The notes: generated by a model not told the origin, from the letters alone. A DNA stretch of 63,756 bases, filler included, from Trichosphaerium sp. ATCC 40318 (GCA_038496445.1; 3 parts of 3 records of this genome joined end to end with filler, not necessarily neighbours in it), one strand, 5' to 3'; shown: positions 3,001 through 21,297, numbered from the whole stretch's first letter. A program made the numbers and translations.

Positions 3001-4841
3001 AATTTGTTGCAGTGGTGTGCCGGCCTAAAAGGAAAGGCGGTTAGGAAAGACTACGAACGGATCGCGTGGTGTGGCAAAAAAAAAACCAAAACAAACTAAA
3101 AAAATTGTTTCACGCACGTCAAGATGGATAGGTGTGGTTGGTGCACCAAAACCTAGAGGTGAAACGACACAAAAGTCAGTAGGCGTTGTAGGTATGGGAT
3201 TGGAGCTTAAGGACTCCATCCAGCCATCCAAGTCAATGTCGCCAAGGTCGTCCAGAGGGGGTGCTGACACTGGACTAGTTGCAACCTGATAGTCACTTGG
3301 TAGTTTGATAGACGTCACTATTGGTACATTCTTTGGAGGTGCGTTGTACTTGGGCAACAACAAGGTGACCTTTTTAATGTGACTAAATGGCCCAGGCGGC
3401 GGTGGTGCTTCTGTTTTGATAACAATGCTCTTGGGCGGCCGTTTGGCTTTAGGTTGTGCGCTTGAACCACTACTCACGTGGAGTTTACGCTTTCTAGGAG
3501 GTGTGGGTGTAATGCTAATGCCTGTCCCTCCTGGAGAGCCTGCGCGACTTTGCCGCTTTGAGCGGTTAAGCCTCTCTGTGCTTGTCTGCAAGCCAGGTGA
3601 TGATCGATTGCTGTTCTTCTTGTCGTCTGTACCATTTGCGTCAGGGGATTGCTGTTTTGCAATGAGGTCATGCCAGTTATGTGCTGCTCGAAGTTTTTTT
3701 CTGTCGCCAGTTGCACGCGGTTTGTGTTTACAACAAAAAGAAGTGTCGGTGTTGTTCGTATTAATGTCAAACACAGGGACCCACACGGCATCCAATGGCA
3801 CCTTTAACGAGATGCCTTTGACACAAAACTGTAGATAAGGGAGGTATGATGATGTGCTTGCTGCATTCGCTTGATTCTACAATTGGCCCAATGTCAGTTA
3901 GATATTGTTTGGTTGGGCTTAGAAAATAAATTTGACTGAAACAAAAAGATAACTAGGTTGGATGTCGTCGTACGTACACCATAGTTTGGTAAAAGTTCGT
4001 TCCAAGAGGTTTGCGTCGTAGGAGAACCCTGACAGATAGCTTGCATATCTCCCACAATGCCAAAGGGACCGAGAATGCCTACAAAATAAGATGAACAATA
4101 CGGCTTCCTTTTTCTAGATATCTCAAAGCTGGTAGTTGAGTCAGAACTTACCTTGTGCTGGCAACTTGAAACTTGGAGAGCCTGCACATGACGGAAATCT
4201 TTGTATTGGAAGAGCTATTGGTCTAAACGCAATCCCAAGGCAAGTGCCGAGTCGAAAAACATTGAGTCTAAGGGCTTGAGCAGTTGTCCTGTCCTGCGTT
4301 TCCATGACAAAATGTCGCCCAACACGAACCACTCCTGACCCTTCCATATATCTACAATGCTAACTTAGGTTTTGCAAGCTATTCAGAGTTTTTTGTGGTA
4401 CCTGTCAACGAGATTGACGAACGCCTCTTCAAACGCGCTTCCAAAAAGTTTCTGGTACTCTGTCGGCTTGTTCAAGTGCCAAACACCCGTTGCTGCTTCT
4501 GTTCAAAGTGTCAGTCAGAGCGCGGGCGCTCGTGTTATTACCACACACCTGTAACGCCATCTAGAAGGCCATTTTCGCCCCGCATGTCTTGCGAATCGTA
4601 CTTGACATTATCCAATGTGAAGAGCAACAGAAACAACGGGTCATCTTCAATTATTGCGACTAACTGCTTTGCTTTTATATATTCTCTGTACAATTCAAAC
4701 AGCTGATGCGGGTGGGCCTTCGAATCTGATCCAATACACCTCACGTACTTGCTTTCAACTGAATTAACGGAAAGTTAATAGGAACTCACGTACAACTAAG
4801 AATACGCGTGTTGAAAGCTTTTTAACCAACTCTTCTGTCAT
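26..4841 (-). CDS. MED13: Mediator kinase-module subunit MED13 (multi-exon)
   Basis: Spliced translation gives Med13 motifs in order: EPYAHEKHVSYMVVAP..LFFSELGAMYQLYNLGNHKPV, VVLYLVWP, LVQAMAFSVFARSRR, VFEPPVVL, AAMTDSMSE, and C-terminal LYNLAW...LPLHF with TGA at 26-28. Probable ATG at 4841 (MTEELVKKLSTRVFLV). GT-AG introns with CTAAC/CTGAC branch points. Confidence 0.85.
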
Positions 4842-4975
4842 TTAGGCAATCAAGTACTTGTTTGGTGTTATGTTGGTCATAGGAGGCGGCTGCTACGTAA
4901 TATTGCAGCAACGAAATGACTTATTGAGACTTTGGCTTTACGTGAACAGCAAAATAAACAATAAACGTAAAAAAC

Positions 4976-5328
4976 CACCCAAAACAAACAAACAGAACAA
5001 GCAAACATTTACAGACATCAACAACATTGTAAATGATTTGTTGAATGACGCAGAGGGAGTAACAGACATATAACATTGTAAATCATATAAATACGTTGTA
5101 TATTGTAGTTTATTGGTACCCCAATATTCAAAATGTTACATATATCAATTGGGCGAGTGGTGTAATTGGTATCACACGCCCTTAGCATGGGCGAGGTACC
5201 GGGATCGAAGCCCGGCTTGTCCAACCATCTTTTTACATTTTGTTTTTATATTTTAATGGTTTTGATTAAGTCTACCAACAATGTTGTAATCATTGTTCAG
5301 GTTTGAACATATGCATAAACACAATTTT
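4976..5328 (+). repeat. Left arm of 353-bp inverted repeat (partner 15548-15900)
   Basis: Reverse complement of 15548-15900. By eye the outer ~315 bp are identical, with 3 transitions in the innermost ~40 bp. Contains a copy of the last ~32 codons of the ARM-repeat gene plus the tRNA gene. Confidence 0.97.
5151..5223 (+). tRNA. tRNA-Ala(AGC)
   Basis: Acceptor stem GGGCGAG/CTTGTCC with the Ala G3:U70 pair, anticodon arm CGCCC-TTAGCAT-GGGCG, T-arm CCGGG-ATCGAAG-CCCGG, discriminator A, TTTTT Pol III terminator 6 nt downstream. Confidence 0.97.
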
Positions 5329-6030
5329 ACCTGGGCAAATACTTTAAAATTTAATCAAAGATATTTTTTTTTTATTTTTTAAAAGATGACAATAACCACA
5401 TGTGTTATTTATTACAATTTATATTTTCATAGTTCAAAATAAAGATCTTCATCCCATTTGTCTGAGCTTTCATCAATAATAGTTGTGTCTTTGTCTACTT
5501 GACCTACATATAGGTGTGGTTAGTAATTTTAACTGGTTGTTGATATAAGTGTTTTTGGAGTTGGTAGGTGGTAAACCAACACCTCAATCCTCCCATGTAT
5601 CTTTAAAATAGGCCATTCAATTAGCAGATTTCCAGTAACTACCAACTAGTATAAACTAGTCTTTATTTGGTAGTGATTCACATTGGAAATTGTCAATATT
5701 CAAGGCTACAAGGATGTTTTGTTGATGCCAAAACATTATCTTGTGAGTGTTGGGAATTTTCTGATCATGTGTGACATTTTCATATACAGTGCATGATGGA
5801 GCTTATATGAATTGCTTTTTCCTTATTTGTGGATACCTTGAGTGTATTTTCATTCCAACTATTAAGCCCAGTAGAAATGTGCTTAATAAGCATATTTATT
5901 GCCTATAGCTGCCACATAATCCCATTCAAAGAAAAGACAATGACGCTGAAGTGGGTACTGTGACTGAATGCTTGACTGGTAGTAGTTTTAGTAGAAAACG
6001 CCACAAAATATCACAAAAATTCCCCTAAGA

Positions 6031-6236
6031 CAGTAGTAAAATCGGGAGTACAGATAATGTACAGGTAGAGTATGGGTCAAAAAGTACAGATTCCATACGA
6101 GTTTTGTACAGGTCAAAAGTATGGAACATGTATGGGTTTAATCCATGTCAAAAATACAGAACCTGTACAGGTAGAGTACAGGTCAAAAGTACAGGTTCCA
6201 TACGGTTTAGTACGGGTCAAAATCCTGATTCCAGTG
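6031..6236 (+). mobile_element. 206-bp non-autonomous DNA element (CAGTAGTAAAATCGG end), 2-bp TSD GA
   Basis: Degenerate 35-bp GTAC repeats inside. Removing it plus one GA restores collinearity with the second retroelement copy near 12778-12800. Confidence 0.8.
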
Positions 6237-6478
6237 GAGAGCTGACAGACTTCAACATCTTGTGGACTTTCCATTCTTTATCCCTCATTGCCTGTAATGT
6301 GGGAAGCCATTTGACTTCAAAAGCTTTGGATGTGTTGTGTTTGACAATGTCAGATACTTTAGCATACCTTTGAGTTGGGGGGTATTTTGACATTTTTAGC
6401 TAATTTGAGTCATTGGGTGAAACATTCGTTGCCTATATTAGAAAGTTTAGATTTCCACAAGTTTGAGTATAAAGTAAT

Positions 6479-6524
6479 AACTCTGGTATGCCTAAAAAAA
6501 AAAAAAAAAAACTCTGGTATGCCT
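6479..6524 (+). other. Solitary poly(A) insertion flanked by ~15-bp target-site duplication
   Basis: AACTCTGGTATGCCT - A tract - (AA)CTCTGGTATGCCT read directly. Confidence 0.85.
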
Positions 6525-7509
6525 GGACCATAAAAAAGCTTTAAAGTTGTTGGCTATGGTAGATATATCAGGGATAGATAAACCACCCAACGGAATGGCA
6601 AACAAATTCTAGTTTCTACAAAAGATCGATAAGTATGAGTGCTATTGTATACTTACTTTGGCCACATTATTCATATTGTCATAATATCCATAAAATAAAA
6701 ACCTTGACTATGTTCCTCCATTGTTTATCAATGTAGGGAGGTATAGTCAATGGCCTAGAAAAGTATAGTATTAGTGATTGGGCATAGGTTCTGAGTATTG
6801 CATGTTTGGATTTAAGAGTTTGGCATAAGGTTTCCAAGATTTGGTAATGTTGGCTAGTGTCTTATGAAAATCAAAAGTTAGCTGAAGAAAAGGGGAGTGC
6901 CTGCTTTAAGTGACCAACAACATTGATTTGAAAACACTTGGACTTGTTCAGAAATAGACCAGATGCTGCAGAAAATTTGTTGATCATATCTAGACACAAA
7001 ATAGTATTTGAGGCAAATAGAATTTGTTTAAGTAAGAGAAAAATAGCTTTAGCCCCATTAACATTCTTGCTTTGGTTAATCATGCAATTGAGAGGTACCA
7101 ACATGATGGCAAAATGGGTGGGAGAAAGTGGGTTACCTTGGCCTGTACCTCTTTCAACTTTAAAAGTTTTGGAAACAACACCATTGATCCTAACTACAAC
7201 TTGAATTTGTAGCTGGGTGCCAATGGCTTGAGCTATAATTTTTGAGACTTCAATGTGCATGAGAACAAGTATTAGTGCATTGTGAGCACAACTATCAAAA
7301 GCTTTTTTGTTGTCTAATGGGCATAAAGAGAGATGTGCCTGACTTTTGGTGTGATTCTACAATTTCTAATGTAGCAATTTGGTTGTCCACAATATGTTGA
7401 CCTGGAATAAAACCATTTTTGTTAGAGCTGATAATGTTGGGTAAAAACTTAAGTAGCCTGTTATTGATGACCTTCATAAATATTTTATAGTTGTTATTGA
7501 GCAGGACAA

Positions 7510-8538
7510 CAGTGGTGGCATCAGACAGAACGCGAATCGCACGTTTTGGGCACGTTTTGGGCACGTTTATTTTCCACACAAAAGACACATTTTGGACACG
7601 TTTTGGGCATGTTTTTTTTTCCACACAAAAGGCACGTTTCTCTTCCACATGCTGGCCACGCAAATCACACGTTTTGGACACGTTTTGGGCATGTTTATTA
7701 TCTACGTTTTGGGCACGCATAAAACACCACTTTATAGAGGGAAAGAAAATAACAGTTTATTATGATACATAACACATAACAATTAAGAGGTTTGGTACAA
7801 TTATTACAAACTTTACATAAAACTATCCCCACACAAACGATACCCAGTTTATATCAACCAACTTCATGTTTTTGCCATTTTACCTGCTTTTTTTGCCAAT
7901 CCTGCCTTATTGTAAATACTTAAGCAAAAACTTACCTAATTAGGCAAAAAATCTTAAATCCAATAATCGTCTTTAAAAAGGGGTTTAATGGAGTTATTGA
8001 GCCATAATATCCTTAAACTACCCTAAATACCTATTTTCTATCATTTTTGCCTTAAAAAGGGGCACCGAACCCCAAACCATCACGAAACCATGCATCGTAC
8101 CTAATAGTGGGCCATACTTCGTTTTTTAAAGGATTCGTACTAGTAGACCTGAGTTATTTACGAAAAATAGGAAAATCAAGAAATTGTTGGTTTTTGGGTA
8201 TTTTTAGATTTTTTCACCTACTTTTAGAGCCATGCCAATACAAACCTAACTACTGCTTACTTGGGTGAAAATACATGTTTTATTGTTAACGATCAGAGGC
8301 GATCGGCTTTGGGGTGAGATGGTTGAGTTTTGAGTTTGTCAATTTTTTATTTTGAATTTTTCTCCAAATTTCTATTAAAAACAGGTCATGGTTAAAACAC
8401 GCAAATGGCACGTTTTGAGCACGTTTATTGCAAATATACAACACGCGAATGGCACGTTTTGGGCACGTTTATTGCATGTTTATTTTCCACGCAAATGGCA
8501 CATTTTAGGCACGCATATTTTGTCTGATTCCACCACTG
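7510..8538 (+). mobile_element. ~1-kb MITE-like element, TIR CAGTGGTGG(A/C)ATC, 2-bp TSD AA
   Basis: Ends CAGTGGTGGCATCAGACA / TGTCTGATTCCACCACTG, with subterminal 11-bp GCACGTTTTGG repeats. Excision with one AA restores the RT motif KPIVLLNNNYKI in frame. Confidence 0.93.
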
Positions 8539-9514
8539 AATGGGTTTATATAATTGTCCAACAAGCTGGCGTCACCTTTTTTGTAAAGAAGGCAAATAAC
8601 TCCTCTACCAATCATGGACATTACCTTCTATGATATCATTGAAAAGAGGACACATGGCAATGGATAGACCTAGATCTTTGTAAAGACACATACCAACACC
8701 ATTTGGGCCAGAAGCTGAGTTGGATGGCATAGACTTTATGGCAGTGAGTATTTCCTTAACAGTAATGGCAGACATATTTGTGGAAATTTTATTTTTGCAA
8801 TACACTTTCCAATAATCCAAAAACTCCTCCATAGCATCTTCATCACCTGACCAAAGAGCATACAAATTTATTTTGTACTAAAGTAATCCTTTGTTGAGCA
8901 TACCTGAAAGCCTAGCATCCTTGGGGTGATCGGTAGAGCATCTCAATTCCTTAATCTGTTGTGATGCTTGCTTACCCTTTAACATCTTAGTTAAATAGAG
9001 TGAAGGTGTTTTTTCATTAGTAACACGGGAAACTTGAGGAACTCACAACTGAGACTCTTCAAATGGAGAGACACATTCTTCATTAACTATTTTTAGTGTG
9101 TACTTGCGCCAAAACTTGTTACACTTCTGTAAAAATAACTTCTGGTTATGCTTAACATCTTTTACTAGCACCAACTTGAGATCACAGTAATTGGATGGCA
9201 GGGATGCATCCATGTAATCAAGCGTGTCTTTCAAGACAGAAGAAATATGTGACTTTTCCAAACCACAAAATTAAGCCACCATGGTTTACATCATTTATAG
9301 GGCATTGCAAAGGTCACTAGAAGTGTATGGTGATCAGCACCTGGAATATGCACTGAATGGAAACATTTAATTGTGTTGAGCCATTTTTGGCTAACAAAAA
9401 TGTAATTGATACAGCTATGTGTATCAGAGAAAGAACAAAATGTGTGAGTGGGGTTGCTGTACCACAGTGCAGCATCCACAAACCCAAGACTGTGCGTGAT
9501 ACTAGTCATGACAC

Positions 9515-10534
9515 CAGTGGTGGAATCGGACAAAATACGCATGCCTAAAACGTTGCTTTTGCATGGAAAATAAATGTGCCCAAAACATGCCCAAAACGTG
9601 CCATTCGCGTGTTGTATATTTGCAATAAATGTGCTCAAAACGTGTCATTTGCGTGTTTTAACCATGACCTGTTTTTAATAGAAATTTGGAGAAAAATTGA
9701 AAATAAAAAAATTGACAAACTCAAAACTCAACCATCTCACCCCAAAGCCGATCGCCTCTGATCGTTAACTATAAAACATGTATTTTCACCCAAGTAAGCA
9801 GTAGTTAGGTTTGTATCGGCATGGCTCTAAAAGTAGGTGAAAAAATCTAAAAATACCCAAAAACCAACAATTTCTTGATTTTCCTATTTTTCGTAAATAA
9901 CTCAGGTCTACTAGTACGAATCCTTTAAAAAACGAAGTATGGCCCACTATTAGGTACGATGCATGGTTTCATGGTGGTTTGGGGTTCAGTGCCTCTTTTT
10001 AAGACAAAAACAATAGAAAATAGGTATTTAGGGTAGTTTAAGGATATTATGGCTCAATAACTCCATTAAACCCCTTTTTAAAGACGATTATTGGATTTGA
10101 GATTTTTTGCCTAATTAGGTAAGTTCTTGCTTAAGTATTTACGATAAGGCAGGATTGGCAAAAAAAGCAGGTAAAATGGCAAAAACATGAAGTTGGTTGA
10201 TATAAACTGGGTATCGTTTGTGTGGGGATAGTTTTATGTAAAGTTTGTAATAATTGTACCAAACCTCTTTGTGTTATGTATTGTAATAAATCGTTATTTT
10301 CTTTTTCTCTATAAAGTGGTGTTTTATGTGTGTTCAAAACGTGCGATATGTGTGGCAAATATGTGTGCCCAAAACATGTGCAAAATGTGGAAAATAAGCG
10401 TGCCTAAAACATGCCCAAAACGTTTGATTTGTGTGGCCAGCATGTGGAAGAGAAACGTGCCTTTTGTGTGGAAAATAAACGCGCCCAAAACGTGCCCAAA
10501 ACGTGTGATCGTGTGTCATTCGATTCCGCCACTG
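9515..10534 (-). mobile_element. Second, inverted copy of the ~1-kb CAGTGG element
   Basis: Highly similar reverse complement of 7510-8538; ends CAGTGGTGGAATCGGAC / GATTCCGCCACTG. No TSD visible, so the flank may be rearranged. Confidence 0.9.
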
Positions 10535-10609
10535 TGGAAAAAAAACGTGTCCAAAACAGCATGTAGAAGAGAAACATGCCTTTTGTGTGAAAAAAAATGT
10601 GTCCAATCT

Positions 10610-11150
10610 ACTGTATTACTTCAGTGTGTTACCAAATTCTTTATAGATTTCCTATCAATAAGATTGACCATTGTTTTCTGGTCTCTTATATTTCTACCCA
10701 AACAAAAAGAAGTTCTGTCTTTGGCATTGCCAGTCCTGGATGCAATACTAATGTTCTATGTTGTTAGCATCGATTTTAACTCAATCAACATGAAAAAATT
10801 GGACTGCTATGCTGCTGGAACAATGAGGTACCTAAAAACCTATTGTCCAACATGATCAGACATTTACTGAAAAAAAATAATGCCATCAAACAGCTAAAAC
10901 CACTTTGCTTTGGGTTTTGATGGTTATGAAGTCTTCAAACTTCATCTTTATGCTTATTTGTGTATTCAACAGCATTATAAGGTAAGTCCACCTCATTCAC
11001 CAAAAATGTTTTCATTTCACTCTACAAGAACTGAGACATTTTATATCCAGCCAATAAACATCCATAAGTCTTCTCAATGCTGATTACAAACTTTTAACAG
11101 TCCTTAACAATAGTCTCAAAACTATTATTCCCTTTGTTGTACAAAACCAT
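10610..11150 (+). mobile_element. Probable decayed retroelement ORF2 fragment
   Basis: CpG-poor, stop-riddled coding-like sequence; LPKQKEVLSL resembles the post-RT LPKxxGGLGL motif. Weak. Confidence 0.35.
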
Positions 11151-11164
11151 TTGTCCTAAAACCC

Positions 11165-11965
11165 AACTTAATATCCACAACTTAACGACTACTTCAGAAA
11201 AATGCTTGAAACCCATAATCGCCTTTAAAAAGTGGTTTAATAGAGCTATTAGGCCATAATATCCTTAAACTACTCCAAATACATATTTTCTGTCGTTTTT
11301 GCCTAAAAATGGTGAGCTGAACCCCAAACCATCATGAAACCATGCATTGTACCTAAATATACCTAATGCTACATTTTCTGAGCAGTTCGTACAGTCAGAC
11401 CAAAGTTATGCAATAAAACAACAAAATTCAGCAAAAAGCTACATTTTGCACTTTATTAAGTTTTCTCCTCTACTTTTTAAGTAAATGCCCTAATAACCTT
11501 AAAACACCCTCATCTATTAATAATACATGTTTTTGTACCTTACGATTACAAGTTGCCATTTAATTGCAGTAATTTTTTTTTGGATTTTTTGATCGCCAAA
11601 TCCAAACAAAATTTGATGGCCAAATTTTTTTTTTGATTGCAAGTGTATACTGATGGTTGTGGTTTTGGCACACATGTGATATATGTGTACACATACATTG
11701 TATGGAAAAAGAGGAGTATATTCTGTATCCAATTTTTCATATTATTTAATTGTACTCTACCCGTACAGATCCCGTACCTAACCCGTACGGGTAGAGTACA
11801 GGTCAACAATACGGAACCCGTACGGATTAAGTACGGGTCAAAAGTACGGGTTCCGTACGGGTTTAGTACGGGTCAAAAGTACGGAACCCGTACGGGTTAA
11901 GTACGGGTCAAAAGTACGGGTTCCATACGGGTTTAGTACAGGTCAAAATCCCAATTCCAGTACTG
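11165..11965 (-). mobile_element. Truncated CAGTA-ended DNA element
   Basis: 11165-11640 is an inverted homologue of 13340-13820. The terminus read on the minus strand, CAGTACTGGAATTGGGATTTTGAC, matches CAGTAGTGAAATCGGGATTTTGAC at 12111. Confidence 0.8.
11790..11945. repeat. Tandem array of 35-bp unit GTACGGGTCAAAAGTACGGAACCCGTACGGGTTAA (~4.5 copies)
   Basis: Read directly; subterminal repeat of the element ending at 11965. Confidence 0.92.
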
Positions 11966-12127
11966 GATTTTGACCTGTACTAAACATGTACTTTTGACCT
12001 GTACTTAACCCATACAGATTCCATACTTTTGACACAGATTAAACCCATATGCAACCTGTATTTTCGACCTGTAGGGATCTGTACTTTTTGATCCATACTC
12101 TACCTGTACACAGTAGTGAAATCGGGA

Positions 12128-12312
12128 TTTTGACATGTACAATATACGTACGTGGCACGTACTTTTGACACGTACAATATACGTACGTGGCACGTACTTT
12201 TCACACGTACAATATACGTACATGGCACGTACTTTTTCACACGTACAATATACGTACGTGCCACATACTTTTCACACGTACAATATACGTACGTGGCATG
12301 TACGTGTTACGT
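12128..12312. repeat. Tandem array of 35-bp unit TTTTCACACGTACAATATACGTACGTGGCACGTAC (~5 copies)
   Basis: Read directly. Confidence 0.95.
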
Positions 12313-12648
12313 ACGTATTAAACAAAATAAGTAAAATTGTTTTACAAAAAGAACTGTATCAACAGTTTCTACTATGTACATCATAATAAACCATACTATT
12401 GAGAAATTGTATTTTATTTAACCATTAATTTGGAATGGTATGTTTGTAATGATTTTTCAAATATGTTTTGTTTCCATTGAATCAAGTACTACAGCTGTGT
12501 TTCTGATTATGTTATTTGCTGTAACAGTACTGTAATCAAGATTTTGGCATATACAAAACCTGTATATGACACATACTTTTGCCTTGTACTTAATCCATAT
12601 GTGACACATACTTTTGACATGTACCTAACCTGCATGCGGTACGTACTT

Positions 12649-13261
12649 ACTCAAAGGTATGTTAAAGTATCTGACATTGTCAAACACAACCCAACCCAAA
12701 CTTACTGATATAAAATGGCCTCTTACACTAAAAATTATGTTGATAACAGTTGAAAGGTTCACAAAATGCGAAACTCTGTTAGTTTTTTAAGGAGAATCAA
12801 CAAACCACATGATATTTTGGAGATTTCTACCAAAATTACTTTCTGCCAGACACACAAATAGCCAGTGTATCCTTTACAATGTCATTGTCTTTTTTTTGAA
12901 TGAAATTATGCCAAAGCTATTGGAAGTATGCTTGTCAAACATATCTCACCAAATCTAAATGGATGCTTTGACTATACTTTGAAATATTCATCTAACAAAG
13001 AAAAAGATATAAAGAACAGTTTTGTTATGCATTGTATTTGGAAGTGTAGGAATTCTCTTTTTTTTGACAATGAAATACCACCCCACAAAAAGACATGTTT
13101 TGGCACCAACAAAACAGTCTTATTACACTCAATATAGATAACTCTCAATGTGTATCATTGTTAGATGAAAAAAAATTTACACAGATAGAAATTATGGGAA
13201 AGCTTTAAGCTAAATGGCCAACTTTATTTTTTTGAACTATGAAAAACAACTTGTAAAAAAA
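12649..13261 (+). mobile_element. 5'-truncated non-LTR retroelement 3' end, nested in the 2.2-kb element
   Basis: Homologous to the reverse complement of ~5420-6375; CIWKCRNSLFF motif typical of L1/Tx1 ORF2 C-termini; ends TTTGAACTATGAAAA...AAAAAAA. Confidence 0.8.
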
Positions 13262-13877
13262 TGCATGCATGGCCTGTATGTGTGGCATGTACTTTCAAAC
13301 TGTATCTAATTTGTATGTGGAATGTACTTTTAACATGTACATAAAAAAAGGTAAAAAAAAATTTGCCCAAAAAATCTGGCATTTGGTAGCCAAAAAATTC
13401 AAAAAAAAATCTCAAAAAATAACAGACAGCTTGTAGTCGCAAGGTACGAAACCATGTATTATTAATAGGAGAGGGTGTTTTAGGATTATTAGGGCATTTA
13501 CTTAAAAACTAGAGGAGAAAACTTAATAAAGTGCAAAATGTAGCTTTTTGCTGTGTTTTGTTGTTTTATTGCATAACTTTGGTCTCTCTGTACAAACCAC
13601 TCAGAAAATGTAGCATTAGGTATAATTAGGTACAATGCATGGTTTCATGGTGGTTTGGGGTTTGGTGCACCATTTTTAAGCAAAAACGACAGAAAATATG
13701 TATTTGGAGTAGTTTAAGGATATTATGGCTTAATAGCTCTATTAAACCACTTTTTAAAGACGATTATGGGTTTCAAGCATTTTTCTGAATAGTCATTAAG
13801 TTGTGGTGGTTAAGTTGCAGTTGTAGGTCGGTAAGGCATGATGATAGAAATATCTCCAGAAACATGGTCGTTTAGTG

Positions 13878-13940
13878 GTAATGTATTGTAATGTATTGTA
13901 ATGTATTGTATGTAGTGTATTGTAATGTATTGTAATGTAT
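13878..13940. repeat. (ATGTATTGTA)n microsatellite
   Basis: Read directly. Confidence 0.85.
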
Positions 13941-14014
13941 AAGTAGTTGTAATTACCAATAAACCAATCCATCGTTTTTAGTATTTTTTGTTCAAAACGA
14001 GGCAAAATTCCAAC

Positions 14015-14294
14015 TTTTGACACGTACAATATACGTACGTGCCACGTACTTTTCACACGTACAATATACGTACGTGGCACGTACTTTTCGCACGTACAAT
14101 ATACGTACGTGGCACGTACTTTTCACACGTACAATATACGTACGTGGCACGTACTTTTCACACGTACAATATACGTACGTGCCACGTACTTTTCACACGG
14201 ATGAAATACGTACGTGGCACGTATTTTGACACGTACAATATACGTACGTGCCACGTACTTTTTCACACGTACAATATACGTACTTCACACGTAC
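14015..14294. repeat. Second array of the 35-bp ACGTAC unit (~8 copies), same orientation as 12128-12312
   Basis: Read directly. Confidence 0.95.
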
Positions 14295-14399
14295 TTCCGA
14301 TTTTACTACTGCATTATCTACTCCCGATTTTACTGTTAGAAAAGTGGTGTCACCTAGCACTCACAACTGGTGAAATAGGATTATGACTTTGTGTTTGTT

Positions 14400-14580
14400 G
14401 TCTTTCAAAAACTTTGACTCAGTTGCTCACAAGGCTATTCAATGCATGTTGGCTAATCTTCCAGCATAGTTTCACATTTAAGATTAAAAATGGAAACAAG
14501 CAAGGTGATTCTCTTTCTCCAACACTTTTTGTTCTCACTCTCAAGTCTTTGCTGTACCATATGCATGAGGTCAACCAACC
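14400..14580 (+). mobile_element. Reverse transcriptase fragment
   Basis: FKIKNGNKQGDSLSPTLF matches the non-LTR RT GxxQGDPLSPxLF motif. Confidence 0.75.
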
Positions 14581-14748
14581 CATCACATATACTTTTCATT
14601 TTTTACATAGTTTGCCACACATATTACTAAAATTAAGAAAGCTGCTAGAGTGTTGTTCAATCTCCATGCATCAACACAACACTCTTCATGTTGCTGCTAT
14701 AACCCTTTGTCTGCATGTGGGCTTGGCTTTTTGGACCTTGAAAGTACA

Positions 14749-15162
14749 AAAAAGGGCACTGAACCCAAACCACCATGAAACCATGCATTGTATCTAACAG
14801 TGGGCCATACTTTTTTTTTAAAGGATTCATACTAGTAGACCTGAGTTATTCACAAAAAATAGAAAAATCAAGAAATTGTTGGTTTTTGGGTATTTTTACA
14901 TTTTTTGCCTACTTTTAAAGCCATGCCGATACAAACATAACTACTGTTTACTTGTAGATACATGTTTTATTGTTAGTGATCAGCTTTGGGGTGAGATGGT
15001 TGAGTTTTGAGTTTGTCAATTTTTTTATTTTTGAATTTTTGACCAACTTTCTATTAAGGACAGGTCATGGATACAACACGCAAATGGCACGTTTTGGGCA
15101 TGTTTATTTTCCACGCAAATGGCACGTTTTAGGCATGCGTATTTTGTTTGATTCCACCACTG
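14749..15162 (+). mobile_element. 5'-truncated third copy of the CAGTGG element
   Basis: Collinear with ~8055-8538; ends GATTCCACCACTG. Confidence 0.85.
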
Positions 15163-15547
15163 TACATTATATGAGAAAAAAAGGTATGTTGTGTATCCAA
15201 TAATTACAATTTGTACTTTACCTGTATGTAACCTGTATGGTTAAAGTATAAATCAATAGTATGAAACCCATACAAGTTAAGTATATGGGTCACATAAGTA
15301 CAGGTTCCATATGGAGTTAGTACAGGTCAAAATCTCAATTTCAATATTGATAGAAACAACCCAGCAACTTTTAAAATTGGTCAAGCTTGAAGATATCAAT
15401 TTTAAGGCATGCCATAACCACCATAGCTACACTTTGGATACCACTCACCATTTTTTTACTAAGCAACACATACACTTTGACCACATTGGCCAATGACTGA
15501 TGACAACCATAGAACAATGCCAATCTATTCTTCACTGATAAAAGTAC

Positions 15548-15900
15548 AAAATTGTGTCTATGCATATGTTCAGACCTGAACAACGATTACAACATTGTTG
15601 GTAGACTTAATCAAAACCATTAAAATATAAAAACAAAATGTAAAAAGATGGTTGGACAAGCCGGGCTTCGATCCCGGTACCTCGCCCATGCTAAGGGCGT
15701 GTGATACCAATTACACCACTCGCCCAATTGATATATGTAACATTTTGAATATTGGGGTACCAATAAACTACAATATACAACGTATTTATATGATTTACAA
15801 TGTTATATGTCTGTTACTCCCTCTGCGTCATTCAACAAATCATTTACAATGTTGTTGATGTCTGTAAATGTTTGCTTGTTCTGTTTGTTTGTTTTGGGTG
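15548..15900 (-). repeat. Right arm of 353-bp inverted repeat
   Basis: Reverse complement of 4976-5328; overlaps the final exon of the ARM-repeat gene. Confidence 0.97.
15653..15725 (-). tRNA. tRNA-Ala(AGC), identical inverted copy
   Basis: Exact reverse complement of 5151-5223. Confidence 0.97.
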
Positions 15901-18900
15901 CAACAACAGGTGACGTTGTTTGCAGTTTGGCAAGCAAGTCTGCAGTCTTTCAATTGAAATTAGCACTAACGAACCATACCGTTTTTACATACCTCTGTAG
16001 TGGCTTTAGTATTGTCATAGCACAGTGTGACTACACTGTCCAATAAGTCCCATATTTCCTATTGTACACACAGTCAGACAAAGGTATATTGGAAGACACC
16101 AACGGTACCTGATTAGGACATCTACTGTTTATATCCTCTTGTATCCAGTCATGTAAACCCTTTAAAGGTTCCAACACAACAGTAATGTGTGTTTTGGGCG
16201 GATATAAGCAGGAATCACTGGTGAGTATTTCTTTGATTGTGCCAAGACATGGCACACATACTGTATTGACAATTTCTTGTCTATAATATCGTTTGATTAC
16301 TGGTACCAGGTAAGAAACACCGTTCAAGTCAGCAAAGCACTGGGCAGTTTCTTGATGTTGTGCACATATGTGGAGGAAGCGTACAATGTAATACCTGAAA
16401 AACAAATTTCAGAAAAACCAGTACCAATAACAACGTACAAGAATAACGGCCGTGCGCTAGCTTCCTCTATTCTAGCTAGCGTCTTTTCAATTACCTTGTT
16501 GCCTAATAAACTCTTTCTCCCAATACAAACATCAGCAATCAATGCAATAGCCTACAATACACAGTAAACAAATTGACAACAATGTAAAGAAATGGTTGTA
16601 CTTGAAAGCAAGTGCGACTGAGCGCATCTTCTGGCCCAGCTTCTTGAATACTAGCCAACAAGGTCTGAACACCTCCGCCACCAACGACCTCTAATACTAT
16701 TCGATTGTCTGTCTTCATGGCTAGTGCAACAAAGGTCAGATTTGCAAATCAAAAAAAAACAACAATACGGAAGCGTACATCCTAGTAAGCTGTCTGCGAC
16801 TTCATTTCGCGATCCGTCACTTTTGCGCAGGGCCTATTGCGCCAGCGTCAATGTAATTGCCAATAATTGCAAGAATTACGCACGCCAAGTAGTTTCGATG
16901 TAGCCTCACTGACAGGAAGACAATTCAAAGGATCGCCTATGGCATCAAATATCATGTACAAATTCCCCTCGAAATCGTAATCGAGAGTACTCCGCTTTAC
17001 AAACCCACGCAGCTCATCTAGCCTCTGAACTGCGCACTGTCCCATAGATACCATCTAAAGCTCATGGTTGAGTATCTATCTACAACAAAAGGCACACTAT
17101 ATCAAAAAGGCGGGTTCGTACCTCCAATAAGGCTGAAGCAGCATGGCGCTTCAGATTCAAACCAGACTCAGACAATAATATATCTGTCAATGTGTTTTGC
17201 AAGTTGTTTTCACGCATCGCATAAAATCCACAATACGACGTTGCAAATTTTGTCAAAGTTTGCGCAGCTGCCTGTCTCACGTTGGGCATGTGGTCCTATA
17301 ACCACACCTGTTAGGAAAAGCATGGCTCTAGTCGATAAAAAAACCCAAAGAGAATACGAGTTCAAACGTACGTCTAGGAGCTTGCTGACTTGTGGTACAA
17401 CACTACCAGCAATAATATGAAACATGCCGTTTGTGCTATCTACCAACTGGCCTAGTATCTCGCAAGAATACTTGCGCACACCTGAGCCTTGGTTTCCCAG
17501 CATGTGACAAATGGTAACCACAACGCCCTGCTCTACAAGCTAGAAAATAAGTTAGAAGGGGAAAAAAGCGTCGAGTGTGCGTGTGGGTATCGTACCTCAT
17601 CAGCCGTTTCTAAATCTTTCAAGGCACGCTGTATATCCAACATACAGGTGAGTACCTGCATTTTACTTAATTTCATTTCAGGGTTCTGTGATAGGGTGCC
17701 AAGCATGCCTAGCGCTTTAGTGGCCTTTGCTTGATCTGGAGCAGTCTGTTGCTTGCCTCTTCTCTCTTGCCATCTTTTGAGGCGAACATGAGCACACAAT
17801 TACACAAAGAGCGCGGTTGTATAAGGATACGTACTTGGCGTATAGAGGCCCTCCTCTAAATACGGTGGCCAATTGCTTGTGCAACATGTCATCAAATTCT
17901 AGTGATTCCACGCCGGACAAAAATCTACGCGTATACGTAACAAACTGTTGTCTCACCCTGCACCAATAGAAACAACATGTTAACCAACAAAATAGATACC
18001 AAACCAAAATGCAAGCGAGAGATACGCACCATTCCTCCTTTTTATCGGATGTTTTCCAATCTCTCTCTTCCAGGCACTTTATGATGTTCGTAATGAACTT
18101 TTTGGCTTGACTGCTTAATGTCTTTTCTCCCTTTACAATAATACCTGTATTGAATGATGCACAAGTGTCGTACCACTGTGGTTTTGATTCGAAAAGTAAG
18201 TTTGTGGTGGACGAGATTGTTCCTGGTATAAGCATGATCTCAGCGCTTGTCAATGCAACATACGGTCTAATTTTGTCTCCAACACCTATTGCAACAACAA
18301 CAGTTAACTATTACTCGAGTGCAATGCTTGGACAGTACCTTGCAGAGGATGCACAAATAACGGACAAGCTATCGCCATCGCACATATTGCAGCCGCAGGT
18401 GCACCAACGAAAAGGATTCTTTAAGACAACAATTAGAATTCCTTTCTTACAAAAGTACTGACGAAATAAAATTACCTGTAACCCAATAACACTGAATACC
18501 ACAGGTGCATTGTATCAGGACCGAATTGTGTAATAATACTAACTAATGACGCGCCGGGGTATACATTCACCTCCAATGTTGGTACATCCACTTTGAATTG
18601 CTGCTCTCGAAATGTGACGGTAGTTTTGCCGGATATCCAGCCTGAGTTGAGGCTATCGTAGACCTCTTGCAGGATATTGGGATCAGGATTGTCCTGGGCA
18701 CGTGTCAACACCAATAATGGTTAAATGACAAACACATCATATGCGTACAATGTATTGTTTTACAGCCTCGCGACCAATAGGGCCAAACACATCAAAATAG
18801 GGTTCGCGTCCAAATATAACTATGAAAATAAAAATGAGTGTGCACAATGACACTTTGACTGATGCATACCAAGACTCTTTTGGATAGCACCACGCTTCAC

Positions 18901-19877: not shown

Positions 19878-21297
19878 ATGAAACTACCTAAAAAGCAATC
19901 ACAAAAATCTTTGTTCGATGTTGTATCTGACAATGCTCACCGTCATGCCGATGAATACACGCAATTAAGACAAATAGAGCATGGGTACGACATTTTATTT
20001 ATTTTAGTTGTTTTGGGTTTTTTCATTTCAAAAAACGAACAACAATCCATTTCCGAACAACCATTTTCGTCAACAATGTAATAAAACGCCTCACACGCAT
20101 TGCAACCTGAGAAAGCTCATTATGATTATTTTAGTACGTCTGGCACCATATTTTCAGCTCTTCACAAAAAGGCCAAAAAGATGGTGTGCATAAAGCGCAT
20201 GAAGCTAAAGGAAAATGTTATAACACCACAAATGATGAAAAACGAAATCCAGGTTATGAAAAAGTCAAAGCGACACAACAATGTCGTCACCTACCTCGAC
20301 AGCTTCATTGTCACCGACGAACTATGGGTACGGCACGGACAACTGGAGAACTAAAAATAAGCGAAGCAAACACTGTACTAACAGCGCATGGTAGGTCGTG
20401 ATGGAGTGGATGGAAAAAGGCGCTTTGTTTGAGTTTTTGGCGGACGGCATTGTATTTGACGGTGCGCAACATAAAGTGCTAGCATGTGTCATTGCCCTAA
20501 TTCCTATTGTAGAACGCGCTATTGCACACGTTTGTTTGTCGATACTGAAGGCTCTGGAATTTCTACATTCAAAGGGAAGGATACACAGGGACGTTAAAAG
20601 CGATAATATACTCATTGACGCTTACGGCAACGTCAAAATAAGTACGTTTTAAACAATCTATCTCAAAGACTTCGCCTATCAAAATCTGACCAAGGTTTTT
20701 CGCAATAGCCGACTTTGGATTCGCAGCACAACTTACCAAGAAAAAACAAAAGCGGCAAACGGTTGTTGGCACGCCGTATTGGATGGCTCCAGAAATTTTG
20801 GGGAGTCCTGCTGGTTATGGCGTCAAAGTTGATATATGGAGTCTCGGTATTGTTTGCTTCGAAATGGCAGAAGGTACCCTTTGCTGGCTTGTTGCTTCTG
20901 TTTTTTTTTTGTCAACAACCTCAAAGTAAGTCCCTCACACTTTGGTACTTTAGGAGAACCTCCGTACTTTAAATCAGCACCTATGCGTGCTATGACATTG
21001 ATGAATATACACGGCATACCTCCACTCTCTAACGAGGGGTATTGGAGCTACGAATTCAAGGAATTTAAGAACTACTGCTTAATGAAGCACCCAATGCGAA
21101 GACCAGATGCCCATCAATTGCTTTCAGTGCGTGTCATATATAGCCTTTCCATACATAGTACAAGCTGTCAAGTATCTGACATTTATTATTATTAGCACCC
21201 ATTTGTGAAAAACGCTTGCTCCAAAGAACACTTTTTGCGAGCGCTCACGCCAGAGACTACGAGAGGCGACCGTGCTGATGTTAGGGCTACAGTCTAA
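19878..21297 (+). CDS. STE20/PAK-family Ser/Thr kinase, essentially catalytic domain only
   Basis: [55 protein letters not shown] motifs across six exons; no CRIB motif seen. Confidence 0.92.

Follow-up and report, generated by a model that had tools for sequence, protein, structure and literature searches.

Why does a gene-dense contig hold a block of transposon debris that is framed by two identical transfer RNA (tRNA) genes, and does this frame have a role in the chromosome? The question is raised by the 10.9-kb island at positions 4976-15900 of a DNA stretch from Trichosphaerium sp. ATCC 40318 (GCA_038496445.1) that comprises 63,756 nucleotides (nt) and is referred to here as the window. 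The island belongs to the contig at window positions 1-22938, which contains no N runs and to which the repeat, tRNA, domain and composition results refer. An original prediction derived from the sequence had proposed that the island is a compact regional centromere or an insulated heterochromatin domain. The underlying observation is accurate and goes beyond chance. The reading favoured by our analysis, with a probability of roughly 55%, is that the only gene-free gap of any size in the contig has become a transposon graveyard. This gap lies downstream of a tRNA-Ala(AGC) gene, and the 353-nt cassette of that gene now flanks it on both sides in inverted orientation. The structure is best filed under a known kind: a nest of transposons that is associated with tRNA genes and decayed by methylation, and whose tRNA cassette, present at both ends, has recently been duplicated or is homogenised.

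Two inverted tRNA cassettes frame the island

The frame of the island is formed by the following features:

4976..5328, no strand: left arm, a cassette in which the 73-nt tRNA is preceded by 175 nt and followed by 105 nt; 350/353 positions equal to the right arm
5151..5223, plus strand: tRNA-Ala(AGC), left copy, with an Rfam score of 48.7 bits, a B box and a T5 run; points to the interior
15653..15725, minus strand: tRNA-Ala(AGC), right copy, with the same sequence as the left copy; points to the interior
15548..15900, no strand: right arm, an inverted copy of the left tRNA cassette

The predicted 353-bp inverted repeats were found exactly at the two borders of the block, with arms of 353 nt each at 4976-5328 and 15548-15900 that are 99% complementary and lie 10,219 nt apart. 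The arms differ by three transitions, at positions 5292, 5303 and 5318, all of which are located in the innermost 37 nt. The arm edges are sharp, since direct alignment yielded an identity of 25% over the outer 40 nt and of 18% over the inner 40 nt, and the comparison of the flanks revealed no target-site duplication beyond the arms. The share of the island that is taken by the arms amounts to 3%. Single-copy sequence is present in inverted duplication at both ends of the segment, which is the arrangement expected of a staggered-break inversion.

Several other origins of the arms were ruled out. The inner arm edge does not represent the insertion junction of the neighbouring long interspersed nuclear element (LINE), as the A-rich tail of this element stops 33 nt before the edge. 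Copying of the cassette by LINE 3' transduction was rejected because poly(A) is absent at both outer edges, and a tRNA-derived short interspersed nuclear element was rejected because 175 nt of the arm precede the tRNA.

The presence of an identical, inward-facing tRNA-Ala(AGC) gene in each arm, as claimed previously, was confirmed by two programs. ARAGORN placed the genes at 5150-5227 (+) and 15649-15726 (-), both facing inward, and the Rfam tRNA model matched both copies over its full length with 48.7 bits, the gathering score being 29. The Rfam alignment contains the G3:U70 identity pair. The B box GGATCGAAGCC (pattern GGWTCGANNCC) occurs within the window in the two tRNAs only, with 0.09 chance matches expected, and a T5 run starts six bases past the tRNA 3' end. 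Judged by the cloverleaf score, the AGC anticodon, the G3:U70 pair, the B box and the oligo-T terminator, both tRNA genes look functional.

In the ARAGORN register, in which the acceptor stem is one base pair longer, the discriminator is followed by an encoded CCA, whereas in the Rfam register an extra A precedes the CCA. An encoded CCA would be unusual in a nuclear gene, and the genomic CCA is probably due to chance. In gathering mode, an Rfam search of the whole contig (1-22938) missed the tRNAs, and a second search in E-value mode over 4900-16000 recovered both at 48.7 bits. As these scores exceed the gathering score, the blank of the first search is taken to be a filter effect, and blanks of this fast-filter mode are not reliable for the tRNAs of this contig. 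When metagenomes were scanned with a 41-mer taken from the tRNA, zero matches resulted.

The interior is a pile of transposon remnants

The 10.2 kb between the arms contain no intact gene. In a survey of reading frames the longest stop-free frames measured 207 amino acids, in repeat units, and 161 amino acids, in a fragment of a reverse transcriptase, so that the block proved to be free of intact protein genes as had been predicted. The following features derive from LINEs:

5362..9514, minus strand: decayed, 5'-truncated non-long-terminal-repeat retrotransposon (LINE), recognised by RVT_1 matches, LINE-1 ORF2p matches and its frames
9294-9510, minus strand: putative C-terminus of the LINE endonuclease, by motif reading only
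8608-8877, 7298-7520 and 6874-7356, minus strand: LINE reverse-transcriptase pieces matching Pfam RVT_1
5362-5388, minus strand: A-rich tail of the LINE, 139 nt downstream of the left tRNA
12649..13345, plus strand: Y2, a second copy of the LINE 3' region that is older and shares about 70% identity with 5604-6384
14387..14747, plus strand: second LINE reverse-transcriptase fragment with a QGDSLSP motif and an RVT_1 match, truncated by X3
6480..6525 (A18 at 6494-6511), plus strand: orphan A18 tract, with a direct duplication CTCTGGTATGCCT of 13-14 nt on either side

The nearest matches of the reverse transcriptase in the PDB were residues 588-714 of human LINE-1 ORF2p, with an E-value of about 2e-5, and searches of Pfam and the PDB with the putative endonuclease piece (9294-9510) gave zero matches. 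No target-site duplication of the LINE was found. An element of the DIRS type with inverted terminal repeats was ruled out, as the reverse transcriptase is of the LINE type and a tyrosine recombinase was not found. The orphan A18 tract together with its duplication is a footprint of L1-like target-primed reverse transcription inside the island, and appears to be a retrotransposition event that has been cut down to its poly(A) tail. This tract sits 1.3 kb from the closest tRNA.

The second group of remnants consists of elements with terminal inverted repeats (TIRs) and of 35-bp arrays, together with one single-copy segment:

7510..8538, plus strand: X-L, a non-autonomous TIR element of 1,029 nt, whose terminal inverted repeats CAGTGGTGGnATCAGACA occupy 7510-7527 and 8521-8538 and which has subterminal GCACGTTTTGG repeats
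9515..~10532, minus strand: X-R, an inverted copy of X (97% over 577 nt) that abuts the 5' end of the LINE remnant
14748..15162, plus strand: X3, an X element reduced to its right-hand 415 nt, with the terminal repeat at 15145-15162
11155..11633, plus strand: X-related arm that pairs with 13353-13827 (480 nt, 88%)
13353..13827, minus strand: X-related arm, the inverted partner of 11155-11633
6031..6240 (array 6058-6194), no strand: Z1, a 35-bp-array element inserted in the LINE 3' region; Y2 is without Z1
11762..12342, no strand: two adjoining arrays of 35-bp units, first of the GTACGG type and then of the CACGTAC type, partly palindromic (arrays 11780-11948 and 12128-12303)
13980..14311 (array 14013-14296), no strand: 35-bp array of 8 copies with 90% matches, related to 12128-12303
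15350..15547, no strand: single-copy segment of 198 nt that separates the right arm from the last array element

X-L interrupts the reverse-transcriptase region of the LINE, whose frame continues on the far side of the insertion. The nesting of up to three layers that had been reported earlier was reproduced for two of them, with X-L, Z1 and the orphan poly(A) tract lying in the LINE remnant; a third layer was not confirmed. No target-site duplication was recognised for X-L or X-R. The 35-bp-array elements terminate in a motif ..CTGATTCCAGTGG that is related to the X termini, and on account of this resemblance the X family and the array elements may be mobilised by one common transposase. Further 35-bp units in arrays occur elsewhere in the interior. 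Matches of the arrays to microRNA models remained far under the gathering scores and were discarded as artefacts of palindromic repeats. The 198-nt segment at 15350-15547, of which neither a second copy nor a displaced continuation was detected within the window, is possibly the original flank downstream of the tRNA.

All self-similar stretches of at least 80 nt were located within 4976-15900, and a Pfam search of the open reading frames (ORFs) in the flanks detected no transposon domain but a protein-kinase domain and weak sub-threshold matches only. These data corroborate the claim that every transposon lies inside the arms and none outside. The order of the interior is not mirrored: the matches represent scattered copies of a few families, as exemplified by 5604-6375, which pairs with 12649-13226 and not with its mirror position at about 14500-15270, and only the tRNA cassettes are inverted with respect to each other.

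Base composition, CpG decay and relative age

The G+C content is 45% in the left flank and 42% in the right flank, whereas both the interior and the arms have 35%. The observed/expected ratio of CpG is 0.56 in the interior (5329-15547), compared with 0.78 and 0.93 in the flanks. Of the 175 substitutions between transposon copies, 40 (23%) are CpG transitions, although CpG sites make up only a few per cent of the positions. The depletion of CpG along with the excess of CpG transitions is the signature of methylated-cytosine deamination. It suggests that the pile has long been methylated and is therefore probably silenced, and that the CpGs of transposons are probably methylated by the organism.

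The divergence of the arms, 3/353 or 0.85%, is much lower than that of the transposon copies, which ranges from 4.9 to 11.2% for the X copies and X-related arms and is about 30% for the copies of the LINE 3' region. The binomial probability of at most 3 differences in the 280 non-tRNA bases of an arm at a divergence of 4.9% is 5e-4. Accordingly, either most of the pile already existed when the cassette was duplicated, or sequence is exchanged between the two copies.

A probable transposon graveyard downstream of a tRNA gene

The features described above can be combined into a sequence of three steps. Initially, elements would have piled up beside a tRNA gene, where insertion is harmless, and the RNA polymerase III (Pol III) complex may have steered some of them to this site. 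Cytosine methylation would then have silenced the pile, and its CpGs would have decayed. More recently, a second, inverted copy of the tRNA cassette would have arisen on the opposite side of the pile, for which a staggered-break inversion of the interior, with duplication of the sequence between the staggered nicks, is one known route. Alternatively, the inverted pair would be older and held uniform by gene conversion.

Since both tRNAs face inward, the interior is the downstream region of both. The surroundings consist mostly of exon-like ORFs and the tRNA-downstream regions lie inside, so that the confinement of the transposons requires no barrier: selection would remove insertions on the outside, and elements with a preference for tRNA-downstream sites would meet such sites only in the interior. 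If they are transcribed, the tRNA genes would probably also delimit the silent block and protect the promoter located 67 nt away, but as a by-product. A silent domain with its edges at possible tRNA barriers is thus compatible with the graveyard, for which no kinetochore role is implied.

Several points weigh against this reading or against parts of it. The case for targeting rests on one element end, namely the A-rich tail at +139 from the tRNA, with 33 nt left between it and the arm edge. Moreover, Y2 and the orphan poly(A) tract are not situated beside a tRNA, so that the elements are not strictly tRNA-directed. LINE-derived insertions at a distance from the tRNAs indicate that passive accumulation accounts for at least part of the pile. 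The clustering of the arm mismatches is a further point: the chance that all three fall into the inner 37 nt is (37/353)^3, or about 0.001, if they are independent, and this distribution is more in keeping with gene conversion than with one recent duplication. The transcript signal consists of contigs only. Finally, a search of a protein collection with the 161-amino-acid reverse-transcriptase fragment returned no relatives, a weak negative in that the length window of the search shuts out full-length relatives.

Neighbouring genes and transcripts

Four public sequencing runs were available, all of which resemble transcript contigs and are informative on messenger RNA (mRNA) and silent on DNA junctions. 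They define the following feature just outside the island:

4794..4909, minus strand: first exon and 5' end of the mRNA of the left neighbour, 67 nt outside the left arm, in a spliced transcript contig

This gene is certainly real and expressed. Its spliced mRNA contig has a length of 3,848 nt, covers 3200-4909 and reveals five GT..AG introns at 3877-3977, 4078-4150, 4352-4401, 4499-4548 and 4752-4793. The ATG is located at about 4842, approximately 134 nt from the arm. The distance of about 135 bp that had been given for the start of a MED13 gene therefore holds, but the name MED13 was not confirmed by Pfam searches with short ORF pieces. The same searches, conducted with individual ORF pieces of the flanks, confirmed neither MED13 nor the ARM gene on the other side, which is no disproof in view of the shortness of the pieces. 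Over 5004-9199, the four runs contained no transcript contigs, apart from one 35-nt repeat match.

A second run of the same sample yielded a 233-nt contig of low depth that corresponds to 4721-5003 and is spliced on the plus strand, with a GT..AG intron at 4790-4845. It is antisense to the first exon of the left gene, enters the left arm by 27 nt and is 90-95% alike, with several indels at 4945-4963. This contig may represent a divergent allele, a paralogue or an upstream antisense transcript.

The right flank contains exon-like ORFs on the minus strand. Additionally, protein kinase exons were detected at 20085-21192 on the plus strand (Pfam Pkinase, E-value of 4e-19 for one exon), which by motif reading are STE20/PAK-like. 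The nearest cluster representatives of this kinase are only about 45-60% identical, and the lineage thus seems to be poorly sampled. A protein-guided metagenome scan with a 196-amino-acid exon gave zero matches, as did a protein homologue search with a 258-amino-acid exon ORF, the latter result being weak since the length window shuts out full-length relatives.

Alternative explanations

Among the competing explanations, that of an insulated heterochromatin domain survives best, and we regard it as possible but clearly less probable than the graveyard. It holds that the tRNA genes, with TFIIIC and Pol III, are kept in order to stop methylated chromatin from reaching the promoter on the left and the gene end on the right. 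The original prediction is supported in part: this half of it receives indirect support from the CpG-depleted interior, the 40 CpG transitions among 175 substitutions, the lack of transcript contigs over 5004-9199 and the covered gene that starts only 67 nt away. The restriction of CpG decay to the interior, the start of the neighbour's mRNA so close to the arm, the functional appearance of both tRNAs and the near identity of the arms would likewise suit a maintained boundary, and there is precedent in the tDNA-Ala barrier of Schizosaccharomyces pombe (PMC2040200) and in the tRNA clusters at the centromere edges of other fission yeasts (PMC6538654). However, CpG decay is a record of past methylation and not of present boundaries, and selection for a barrier leaves the identity of the 280 non-tRNA bases unexplained. 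Furthermore, a single tRNA gene beside a transposon pile is a common arrangement even where no boundary role is selected.

A compact regional centromere of about 10 kb appears improbable. According to this explanation, CenH3 would occupy a methylated transposon core and the convergent, homogenised tRNA-Ala pair would delimit it on both sides as Pol III barriers right beside active genes, which would amount to an independently evolved, minimal version of the fission-yeast plan. The island does have the appropriate outline, being a gene-free transposon block of about 10 kb with a G+C content of 31-38% compared with 42-47% outside and with inverted tRNA-Ala genes on both sides, and small centromeres made of transposon clusters or of inverted repeats are known (PMC6538654; other examples from general knowledge). 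Yet the analysis provided no positive evidence for this half of the prediction. The mirrored part is limited to the 353-nt cassettes, outer repeats are absent and the arms are far younger than their contents; transposon piles in general are low in G+C, silent and devoid of genes. The assembly in short pieces suggests that the genome contains many repeats and therefore many such islands, and the prior for any single island is a few per cent. The probability that we assign to a centromere is roughly this prior for one island in a repeat-rich, fragmented assembly, raised slightly for the tRNA frame.

It is about equally improbable, or marginally more so, that the frame is an assembly artefact in which the 353-nt cassette is a dispersed repeat at which unrelated pieces were joined. 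The contig is short, and the four sequencing runs provide transcript contigs instead of DNA reads over the junctions. Against such a misjoin, the arms differ at three positions and have therefore not been collapsed, N runs are absent, and the non-mirrored interior speaks against hairpin or amplification chimeras; the mRNA contig at 3200-4909 confirms the left flank, although the flank only.

One giant composite transposon, with 353-nt terminal inverted repeats that carry a tRNA gene, is the least credible explanation, as the sharp outer edges of the arms are offset by flanks that are just 25% identical over the outer 40 nt and show no target-site duplication, by the absence of a transposase domain or any other intact gene inside, by arm termini that are not themselves inverted repeats and by contents that are unrelated and much older elements.

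Significance and comparison with known systems

If the island is only a transposon nest, it adds a case in which Pol III genes mark tolerated mobile DNA in an organism other than the well-studied amoebae and yeasts, and it also displays a tRNA cassette that was copied or homogenised across the nest. If the tRNAs proved to be boundaries, the island would be a compact natural insulator that keeps methylated DNA 67 nt from an active promoter. The significance would be greatest if CenH3 sits on the island, and it is modest unless a boundary or kinetochore role holds.

In fission yeasts, the tDNA-Ala at cen1 of S. pombe is an orientation-independent barrier that requires Pol III and TFIIIC (PMC2040200). 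In Schizosaccharomyces octosporus and Schizosaccharomyces cryophilus, tRNA clusters are located at the transitions between CENP-A chromatin and heterochromatin and at the outer centromere edges, and the authors of that study surmise that Pol III promoters were the first transposon targets (PMC6538654). The island resembles fission-yeast centromeres in that tRNA-Ala genes lie within inverted repeats where a silent repeat domain ends. In fission-yeast centromeres, kilobase-long inverted repeats enclose a CENP-A core of non-repetitive DNA, and heterochromatic outer repeats follow on the other side of the tRNAs. In contrast, the island has 353-nt arms instead of a kilobase-sized imr and transposon debris instead of a non-repetitive core; no repeats occur outside 4976-15900, and genes begin 67-134 nt beyond the arms.

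The centromeres of Komagataella phaffii and Candida tropicalis are composed of arms of 2-4 kb, which make up most of the locus, around a core of 1-3 kb. A short gene-free region within an inverted repeat is common to these centromeres and the island, whose arms account for 3% of its length and consist of a tRNA cassette.

With regard to the arms, a parallel is offered by the inverted duplications that were found at 59% of Drosophila inversions and explained by a staggered-break model (PMC1885836). The Drosophila duplications and the arms of the island have in common that a short non-repetitive segment, with sharp edges and no target-site duplication, is present once per end in inverted orientation.

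With regard to the contents, the dictyostelid TRE3 LINEs and Skipper-2 are comparable. These have a well-known preference for sites some 100 bp downstream of tRNA genes, and the A-rich tail of one LINE at +139 here is a suggestive, although single, case. Dictyostelids likewise have a gene-dense genome in which the neighbourhood of tRNA genes serves as a dump, and their tRNA genes occur in pairs with the same anticodon. The G+C content of 35-45% found here is unlike the base composition of Dictyostelium. The search of the protein collection with the reverse-transcriptase fragment disclosed no sequence kinship with TRE elements. The island differs from the dictyostelid case in that a single element end is close to a tRNA and in that DNA-type elements with TIRs form much of the pile.

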